Shown: one piece after another, positions 37,001 to 40,000 of the stretch
How positions within the stretch are numbered: position 1 is the stretch's first letter
How the letters are laid out: the number at the start of each line of letters is the position of its first letter
Origin: Octopus sinensis
Lineage: Eukaryota
Direction of reading: 5' to 3'
Assembly (NCBI RefSeq): GCF_006345805.1
Contig: NC_043007.1
Location: 37,448,001-37,512,000, forward strand
Length of the DNA: 64,000 bases
Made by a program: the position numbers and the translations under genes
Notes under the pieces: generated by a model
What the model was told of the DNA's origin: nothing
The model's database searches: none
Seen by the model: only the letters and a program-made list of their open reading frames with translations

Positions 37001-40000
37001 ATGTACGGTGGTGGGGCGATATAATGGTTGTATACTGTCCACTTAACGTGACAGTAGGGGATTACACCACCGCTGTTTAGCCCTAGGCAGCATCGACGCT
37101 TCCTGTCGGCTTCGACACACTTACTGTGTCCTTATATATTTACGAAGGGGAGACAAATACCCCCAACAGCTAGGCCTGCATCTAGAGACACGCATGTTTC
37201 AGGGTGTTTGCCCATCATCGGACAAGAGTAGCATAAGCCTGCTAGCTGCGGATATTTGTCTCGATTTCGCAAATATATATATCTAATTTTCAGTGAAGTA
37301 TATTCACTGATTACCAAAATAAGAAATATTAAATTTCTAAATATCTCATAGAGATATGTACGGTGGTGTGGTGGGGCAATAATAACAATAATAACAAAGG
37401 GTAAAATTAATTAGTAATCAATAATTTCACCAAGTAGAATTCGGCATGAAAAAGGACCATTTCACGGTAAACTTAAGTAATACTTTATAATTAGGGTTCA
37501 GCAAAGATTTGCTTTACCACATACCGAAGTTTAGAAATAGCAGCCAAAAAACCTTAGCTATTTCCCTTACTTTAAAAAGGGACTCCCGGAAAAAAACAAA
37601 GTACTCGAAAACAATCCACGCAGGCAGAGAGGAAAAATAACGAAAATCAATCGATATTTGATACCTATGTACGCGTTTCGGAATTAGATCGGTATAAAGA
37701 ATGTAGAATTTATACTTTACCCGACCATTTTCTTCATCAGCATGGGACTTCAACAATATTGAATATTAAAAATATTAGACTCGAAGGCATGAGTTGAGGT
37801 GATGTCTTCTAGTGCCTTCAAATTTAATACACAATTATTAATAATTGAGACACAATTATTTATAATTGAAGAATCCTACGCTGAGGAGGAAAATAGTCAG
37901 GTAAGACATAATTATTTAATTTTTATGCTCTACAATGACTTGATTCCGAAACGTACGTCCGTAGGTAACTTAATATAGAATGATTTCCGTCATTTCTTTC
38001 TCTTTTGCCTGCGTCGTTTGTTTTTTAAGTGCTTTGGTTTTACTGGGATCTCCCTTTTAAGTAGAAAGAATAGCCAAAACTTTTTGACTGCTATTTCTAA
38101 ATTCGGTGTGTGGTGAGGCAAATCGTTGCTGAACCCTTAATTAATTAGTATATATATATATATATATATATATAATATATATATATATATATATATATAT
38201 ATATATATATATATATATTATATATAATATATGTATATATATATATATAGATATATATATATAATATATATATATATGTATTTAATATATATATATATAT
38301 ATATATATATATGTATGTATATATATATATATATATATATATATATATATATATATTGTATGTATATATATATATATAATATATATATGTATATATATAT
38401 ATATATATATATATATATATATATGTATGTATATATATAATATATATATATGTATGATATATATATATATATATATATATATGTATGTATATATTATATA
38501 TATATATATATATATTATATGTATGTATATATATATATAATATATATATATATGTATGTATGTATATATATATATATATATATATGTATGTATATATATA
38601 TATATAATGTATGTATATATATATGTATGTATATATATATATATATGTATATATATATGTATGTATATATATAATATATATATATATATATATGTATATA
38701 TGTATATATATATATATATATATATATAAGCATATGTGTGTGGCGTGAGGTGTGTGTGTGTGCGTGCACGTTTGTATGTGCATACATATATATATATGAC
38801 AGATTTCCGCACAATTTCTTTCAACTAACAGTGCATTGTCGATCGAAGGCAATAGTTAAAAACACTTGAGTAACTGAACCTGAAAACATGTTGCTGTGAT
38901 GCGAACTTCTAAACCACACAGCTGTAGCAATGATCTACATATGTCTACACATACAAATAATTTAGTCCTTCCACTCTACGATTTTACTGTTTCTTATTGT
39001 TATTTAGAAGTTGAATGATCGAGTGGACTAACGTCTAAACGATTATACGTTCAAATACGCTGCAAGCATTTCATAACGTTTCTCGTACAAGCAATTTGCT
39101 CTACATGATTCAGTTGGCATAATTGTCAGAATTAAGTAGTAGATCATCTGAGATTGCCTCAGATCCAAGAGAAAGTCAATCTGTTTTATGCATGACACAG
39201 TAAAAAAGCAAAATGTAATTGATATTATACTTTTTAATTTTTACATCGGCCTGAAACGGATACGATTCAATAGGATTTGAATTCAAAAACAAAACAGACA
39301 TAAACTGAAACAAAATACTTGTATAATTCATTTTTTTAAAAATAATAAATGCGCCCTTTTTAAAGCCTATCCAGGTTCATGGGCCCGGTTTCCCGATTTC
39401 AATAGCGTATGTGTTCCTGAGCTGAGTGGACTGGAGCAACGTGAAATGAAGTGTTTTGCTCAAGAACACAAGGCGTTGCCCGGTCCAGGAATCGAAACCA
39501 CAATCTTACGATCATGATGCTGACACCCTTACCACTAAGCCCCACGCATCCACCATAATTTATTTTAGCCAGAGTGAAAGCGCATGACCGAATGGTTAAG
39601 GTGTTCAGCTTGCGATCATAAGGTCGTGTGTTCGATTTCTGGACACAGGAAGCACGTTGTGTCCTTGAGCAAGGCACTTCATTTCACGGTCATCCAGGCT
39701 GCACAACTGCACACAGCCGGATGATTGTGCAAACCTATTTCCTTCCAACTGTATTATAACGCTATACTTTCTCGTGAGTAAGACTTAGTAATATGCTTTT
39801 AGTTAATTTATTCAGACATTATGCTATTCGGACCAACTTTGAGAAAAACATTAGTCACAGGGGCCGAAGATATAATTTGACTTCTGTAAGTGAACTAACA
39901 GAATCGATGACGTACCGTGGGAATATAATTTCTGTTTTTCCTTATGTGATAGGATGATAGACATAACATCATTCACCAGTCTCTACTTTATGGTGGAGGC

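Follow-up and report, generated by a model that had tools for sequence, protein, structure and literature searches.

The window analysed in this study is a stretch of 64,000 nucleotides from Octopus sinensis (contig NC_043007.1, positions 37,448,001 to 37,512,000 of the forward strand, renumbered here from 1). It contains an SLC22-like gene model, one intron of which holds a repeat complex with three hammerhead ribozyme motifs: one on the plus strand, hereafter called the plus copy, and two on the minus strand, called copies A and B. The coordinates of the features are collected in Table 1. The two exons flanking the intron belong to the predicted O. vulgaris protein P0001, are joined by GT...AG, and lie on the same strand as the plus copy, in agreement with the sense orientation within an intron given in a preliminary description of this DNA. 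As for the SLC22-like character of the exons, the exon at 32.2 kb aligns to residues 123–203 of human OAT1, and the intron interrupts transmembrane segment 7 (TM7), near residue 346 of human OAT1. The intron is probably the fourth or the fifth, and the earlier label "intron 5" could not be confirmed.

Table 1. Features of the hammerhead-bearing intron and related elements (window positions; MFE, minimum free energy; PLE, Penelope-like element)
Feature	Position	Strand	Basis or remark
GT...AG intron of the SLC22-like gene model, holding the whole repeat complex	34877–41656	+	exons 34572–34877 and 41657–41740
Left (TA)n microsatellite flank	35016–35297		
Third copy of the element's terminal 111 bp (matches 37388–37493)	35295–35405	−	adjoins left (TA)n; kept in the O. 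vulgaris reference
3.94-kb stretch with all three copies, missing from OX597824.1 (locus L001 near 10987)	35742–39680		clean junction, no target-site duplication
Direct repeat pair, 93–97% identical, 1008 bp apart (36582–36794 and 37591–37802)	36582–37802	−	
Hammerhead copy A (core 36656–36738)	36645–36749	−	covariance model R1, 128.2 bits; predicted cut between 36662 and 36661
Imperfect palindrome, arms of ~330 bp, 72% identity, centre near 37810	37488–38143		repeat comparison
Hammerhead copy B (core 37664–37746)	37654–37757	−	R1, 120.1 bits; predicted cut between 37670 and 37669
Complete type I hammerhead domain, plus copy	37868–37972	+	outward pairing, MFE with flanks; R1 match 37864–37976, 105.6 bits
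Closing stem AAG/CUU	37869–37871 with 37969–37971	+	fold with flanks, 3 bp
Internal loop 1, AAU/UAA, symmetric	37872–37874 and 37966–37968	+	fold with flanks
Helix I, 6 bp, CCUACG with CGUAGG	37875–37880 with 37960–37965	+	direct read, folds
Core C3–A9, CUGAGGA (N7 = G)	37881–37887	+	direct read, Rfam alignment
Helix II, layered	37888–37947	+	centroid fold, pair counts
Helix II, proximal 4 bp GGAA/UUCC, including G10.1–C11.1	37888–37891 with 37944–37947	+	
Helix II, AGUCA/UGACU, following the internal loop AAU/UGA	37895–37899 with 37936–37940	+	followed by an imperfect hairpin
Core G12 A13 A14, helix III, C17	37948–37959	+	direct read, Rfam alignment
Helix III ACGUACGU, palindromic, 2 bp + GUAC loop	37951–37958	+	
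Right (TA)n microsatellite flank	38143–38760		
PLE reverse transcriptase fragment, genuine	20464–21600	+	mollusc homologues with RVT_1, GIY-YIG (PF01541), PF26215, PF28514

The plus strand at 37875–37965 reads CCTACG, CTGAGGA, the 60 nt of helix II (beginning with GG and ending with CC), GAAA, CGTACGT, the C at the cut site, and CGTAGG. Direct reading and alignment to the Rfam family Hammerhead_1 (RF00163, type I) both showed that the core is complete (CUGAGGA, GAAA, A15.1–U16.1, and C17), with G at N7, a G–C pair at 10.1–11.1, and the triplet GUC. C17 is located at 37959, and the predicted cut site is 37959/37960. The statements of the preliminary description on the core nucleotides, the GUC triplet, and the cut position were thereby borne out. 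Its wording "fully canonical" holds for the complete core but has to be qualified in view of the minimal helix III and the unusual length of helix II. The Rfam alignment spans exactly 37875–37965 and covers the full model (positions 1–45) with all core positions matching; it gave 21.5 bits (E = 0.0094 in a scan of 401 nt) and differs from the family by a 58-nt insertion in helix II. We also searched both strands of the window with a strict descriptor composed of a 6-bp helix I, CUGANGA, a G–C-closed helix II, GAAA, a 15.2–16.2 pair, and UH. The sole match was the site of the plus copy. No match was found in 300 dinucleotide-preserving shuffles, and 0.003 matches per window were obtained when one mismatch in stem I was tolerated. 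The folds and the descriptor agree on the type I features of the plus copy, namely three helices around the core, an open-ended helix I, and the G10.1–C11.1 pair.

According to published work, canonical metazoan type I hammerheads have a helix I of 6 bp, a helix II of 4 bp, interacting loops, and a helix III of 1–2 bp capped by a palindromic loop of 2–4 nt (PMC4209133; PMC7229834). The predicted architecture of the plus copy matches this description, and its sole unusual trait is loop 2, which is an internal loop running into a long hairpin and gives a long helix II. As a monomer, helix III (ACGUACGU) can form 2 bp with a GUAC loop at most, and RNAfold leaves it unformed. Cofolding of the homodimer gave an 8-bp intermolecular helix III with an energy of −51.4 kcal/mol versus 2 × −20.2 kcal/mol, and a double-hammerhead dimer of the plus copy is predicted to be stable.

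Copies A and B share CUGAUGA, GAAA, the triplet GUA, and helix III ACGCGU, and the core changes among the three copies are found only at the free positions N7 and H17. Helix I of copy A is CCCAUG/CAUGGG. Copy B, the minus copy nearer to the plus copy, has CATAGG, resulting in a C·A mismatch in helix I. The plus copy is the best-formed of the three, with G10.1–C11.1, a perfect helix I, and GUC. The antisense relative mentioned in the preliminary description exists in the form of these two minus-strand copies, and the stem CCCATG/CATGGG ascribed to it is that of copy A. Our comparison reproduced the two compensatory changes in stem I (T–A versus C–G and C–G versus T–A) and the change in helix III (ACGTACGT versus ACGCGT, both palindromic). 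Helix II, which had been described as rewritten, is changed in its distal part, including a 6-nt indel, and folds nonetheless.

Covariation was examined with a three-copy alignment of the extended domain containing 25 structure pairs. In seven of these pairs both partners have changed with pairing retained; the closing stem accounts for three of them, and helices I and II for two each. Overall, 93% of the cells pair. None of 500 shuffles reached as high a number, and sliding the register of the 3' partner gave one such pair at the maximum. The divergence inside the ribozyme (27.5%) is equal to that elsewhere in the repeat arms (28.7%), and a neutral simulation with the substitution pattern of the arms gave an expectation of 1.2 compensated pairs (P about 1.4e-4). 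Because copies A and B are near-identical, the covariation covers two independent lineages. The changes are therefore coordinated and, as far as two lineages can show, speak for selection on the fold in this family, as had been supposed in the preliminary description.

The three copies are embedded in a complex of direct and inverted repeats. The plus copy is in the right arm of the imperfect palindrome and copy B in its left arm, and copies A and B, carried by the two units of the direct repeat, share one orientation on the minus strand at a distance of 1008 bp. The plus copy can be described as truncated and inverted, and a partial direct repeat lies beside it; the (TA)n tracts enclose the whole complex. 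The GC content of the complex is 0.34–0.35, and it contains no open reading frame (ORF) above 94 aa. No long ORF is present between the units of the direct repeat, and a six-frame pseudo-protein of the complex found zero homologues in a protein database search.

The window is approximately 97.5% identical to the Octopus vulgaris chromosome OX597824.1, with many smaller indels, and the 3.94-kb block containing the three copies is missing from that chromosome. These differences indicate that the window derives from another haplotype, assembly, or sister species. OX597824.1 without the block still predicts the same flanking exons, and it keeps the left terminal piece of the element. A deletion in the O. 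vulgaris reference is the simpler reading because the reference keeps this piece, and an assembly collapse in the reference may be the alternative. Under either reading, the block does not belong to what is conserved in the gene.

PLE insertions typically combine a partial tandem with an inverted truncated copy and show a target bias toward (TA)n (PMC8557442). The octopus complex displays a partial tandem, an inverted truncated copy, and a microsatellite target, and it also has the features of a retrozyme: a type I hammerhead of the canonical form, the helix III of which is short and palindromic, on a non-coding sequence of low GC content (<45–50%). It has been argued that animal retrozymes with type I hammerheads derive from PLEs and are non-autonomous (PMC7229834; bioRxiv 10.64898/2026.07.22.740005). 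The complex was compared with both groups. The non-LTR (long terminal repeat) retrozymes and satellites of newt, Schistosoma, coral, mussel, and axolotl (Cervera & de la Pena 2020, PMC7229834) resemble the octopus sequence in the type I topology, the 6-bp helix I, the 4-bp helix II with a loop, the helix III of 1–2 bp with a palindromic tetraloop, the low-GC non-coding repeat, the presence of neighbouring same-sense copies (here on the minus strand), and the predicted double-hammerhead dimer. They differ in that their loop 2 is closed, whereas that of the octopus copy is an internal loop with a hairpin of ~45 nt, and in that their copies are spaced by 170–400 bp rather than 1008 bp. In addition, only three octopus copies were seen, one of them inverted.

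The hammerheads in the pseudo-LTRs of PLEs (Cervera & de la Pena 2014, PMC4209133; Craig et al. 2021, PMC8557442) share with the octopus sequence the insertion architecture, the (TA)n flanks, the palindromic helix III, and the location of the motif in the non-coding end of the unit, and both the genome and the window contain PLEs. In contrast, the octopus element lacks an attached ORF for reverse transcriptase (RT) and GIY-YIG endonuclease, so its motif is not part of a terminal repeat of such an element, and the motif is canonical rather than a minimal hammerhead (min-HHR). The min-HHR has an extra unpaired base between positions 9 and 10.1, which the octopus motif lacks, a helix I of 4–5 bp rather than 6 bp, and no or a minimal helix III, whereas the octopus motif has one of 2 bp with a loop. 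The PLE RT fragment in the window is 16 kb from the hammerhead complex; its ORF runs into a microsatellite without the endonuclease part, no hammerhead was found beside it, nor any DNA similarity to the complex.

The structural, covariation, and repeat analyses led us to conclude that the motif is probably a canonical metazoan type I hammerhead on a non-coding, non-autonomous retrozyme or Penelope-like element, inserted in (TA)n within the SLC22-like intron of an octopus of the O. vulgaris group. A known class gains a member, for which we infer catalysis, a circular-RNA life cycle, and mobilisation by PLEs.

Several observations weigh against this conclusion. With 21.5 bits, the plus copy falls short of the Rfam gathering threshold (34) owing to its 58-nt helix II insertion, and whole-window Rfam scans, whether run with the gathering threshold or an E-value, gave no hammerhead match at this site, which is reported by the local scan alone. 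Both copies A and B carry A·C at 10.1/11.1, which probably weakens them. There is no RT or GIY-YIG ORF within 35.3–38.15 kb, and no PLE ORF adjoins the element. The period of the direct repeat, 1008 bp, exceeds the 170–400 nt reported for animal retrozymes. A search of 190 kb of octopus DNA with R1 found only the three copies and no further family member; the same-sense copies amount to two, with one inverted, and no array appeared in the DNA searched. One additional R1 match, at 43530–43629 of the O. vulgaris locus L001 (20.7 bits), is degenerate and lacks the core. Exact-pattern scans of metagenome contigs for the family gave 0 matches and then 21 random-looking matches without helix I or III. 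Finally, no copy of the element was present in the PLE loci that had been reached through the PLE RT of the window, namely two loci of O. bimaculoides (L002 and L003) and a scaffold (L004) from the European Nucleotide Archive (ENA).

On a retrozyme or Penelope-like element, the ribozyme would serve the element and not the host. Multimeric or tandem transcripts of the element would cleave themselves at the UH site, and with such a short palindromic helix III the cleavage may often proceed via two copies paired as a double hammerhead. The cleaved RNA is thought to be copied by a PLE reverse transcriptase. The compensatory changes between the plus and minus copies would record selection that acted on the fold during the active period of the source elements. 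The copies found here are interpreted as remnants, and the plus copy is most likely buried in a long hairpin of the host-sense RNA, where it would not cut.

The sequence could also be explained in other ways. We regard it as next to impossible that the motif is a chance consensus match in AT-rich intronic DNA. The Rfam score under the gathering threshold and the silence of the whole-window scans at this site would be compatible with such an origin, whereas none of the 300 shuffles yielded the motif, the core is kept in three homologous copies, seven pairs covary, and helix I continues past the descriptor. A chance origin was rejected on the shuffle, covariation, and neutral-simulation results, which effectively refute it. 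We likewise consider it very improbable that the plus copy represents a cephalopod variant of the ribozyme that is active and as yet undescribed. In such a variant, the closed loop 2 would be replaced by the internal loop (AAU/UGA) and the long hairpin, and a tertiary contact would be formed between the near-identical internal loops of helix I (AAU/UAA) and helix II (AAU/UAA or AAU/UGA). With the 3.94-kb block present or absent between haplotypes or species, this might lead to allele-specific cleavage of, or double-stranded RNA (dsRNA) in, the SLC22-like pre-mRNA.

The other two explanations concern the host-sense RNA. Cephalopods edit their RNA heavily, and the relevant structure might be the ~330-bp imperfect inverted repeat, which would form a long dsRNA hairpin as a possible substrate of ADAR or the small-RNA machinery and carry the hammerhead as a passenger. 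The palindrome itself, with its 72% identity, and the MFE of the sequence in context (−279.3 kcal/mol), in which the hammerhead is fully paired with the other arm, speak for the hairpin. However, it can be regarded as a by-product of the common PLE insertion pattern (PMC8557442), and the block is dispensable; we consider the explanation rather unlikely. The preliminary description had proposed that the copy may cut the SLC22 pre-mRNA. In a fuller form of this proposal, the SLC22-like pre-mRNA would be cut co-transcriptionally by the sense copy, acting from within the intron, and the host gene would be modulated in this way, as with the conserved amniote hammerheads in introns. The motif is indeed in sense orientation in a GT–AG intron, it is the best-formed of the three copies, and its 2-bp helix III with a tetraloop is of the type called self-sufficient in invertebrate retrozymes (PMC7229834). 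However, in the MFE structure of the host-sense RNA at 37480–38150, 68 hammerhead bases pair with the upstream arm and none with one another; the ribozyme fold can be imposed only at a cost of 33.7 kcal/mol, and the pairing probability of stem I is 0. The inverted arm that would sequester the motif in this way is located upstream and is transcribed first. Moreover, the host transcript contains a single sense copy, whereas the class with a 2-bp helix III often requires a second same-sense copy, and therefore a double hammerhead could be formed only between two separate pre-mRNA molecules. The block is missing from the O. vulgaris reference, in which the gene model persists with the flanking exons, and the copy is therefore dispensable. 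In addition, exon tethering, ascribed to Dye et al. 2006, reportedly means that cuts by an intronic ribozyme need not block splicing. Intronic sites are ordinary for such repeats: approximately 42–44% of the Xenopus retrozyme copies overlap introns (bioRxiv 10.64898/2026.07.22.740005). The amniote hammerheads HH9 and HH10 (de la Pena & Garcia-Robles 2010, PMC2933863, as cited in PMC7229834) are ultraconserved, single-copy, and located at orthologous positions across species. The octopus copy resembles them in being a type I hammerhead in sense orientation in an intron of a protein-coding gene, but differs in lying in a repeat and in being missing from the same locus of the O. vulgaris reference, where the orthologous intron lacks the block. 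Taken together, these points make cleavage of the host pre-mRNA by the plus copy unlikely, the motif is probably not a regulator of the host gene, and we consider the proposal as a whole very improbable.

Some further observations were made on hammerhead-like strings. Candidates found with a relaxed descriptor at 14477, 45883, and 49134 had no Rfam support and were treated as chance matches. The last of them (49134–49181, +), which also occurs at 21227–21274 of the O. vulgaris locus L001, is a min-HHR-like string, CTGATGA-C-GGCTG...CAGCT-GAAACGT-T, in which helix I is weak. A local scan gave no Rfam hammerhead match for it, and it is probably due to chance. The ENA metagenome scaffold L004 contains, at 3008–3050 (+) and ~270 nt past the stop of a 659-aa PLE ORF, the motif CGCTAA CTGACGA ... 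GAAA CCGG T T TTAGCG, with a perfect 6-bp helix I, a palindromic helix III (ACCGGT), and a very weak A–U helix II. This motif looks like a PLE-type hammerhead of a weak, min-HHR-like form.

As for the host gene, SLC22-like exons are located at 32130–32630, 34434–34877, and 41657–41740 (+). The annotation of P0001 begins inside an exon, at 34572, the SLC22-like exons upstream are unannotated, and P0001 fuses the SLC22-like exons to a carbonic anhydrase domain ~60 kb away. P0001 is apparently a chimeric model; alternatively, the SLC22-like gene may be in the course of decay.

On its right side, the 3.94-kb indel breaks within tRNA-like repeat sequence near 39680, and another tRNA-like sequence is found at 46267–46338. 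A short repeat of ~250–400 bp occurs many times in both the window and L001, including the copies at 32648–32900, 58035–58447, 61876–62269, and 63078–63458; this abundant repeat is probably a tRNA-derived short interspersed element (SINE). Near-identical stretches of ~500 bp at 653–1153 and 3514–4011 (+) flank a GC-rich ORF of 679 aa (1195–3234, −) that has internal repeats and no Pfam match, and the region 653–4011 looks like another repeat-bounded element. Transposon remnants are located at 23490–25410 (−), 30850–31242 (+), and 54608–55964 (+), the types listed for these three sites being a hAT dimerisation domain with DUF4371, a Mos1-type mariner helix-turn-helix (HTH), and a second reverse transcriptase ORF.

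The inverted-repeat context, together with the lack of the block in a reference genome, weakens the attractive notion of a ribozyme acting on the host gene, and the locus raises no new question. The locus illustrates that evidence of covariation can be held at a single site when two diverged copies lie side by side. With its unusually long helix II, the octopus motif adds a cephalopod example to the known link of type I hammerheads with retrozyme and Penelope-like repeats.

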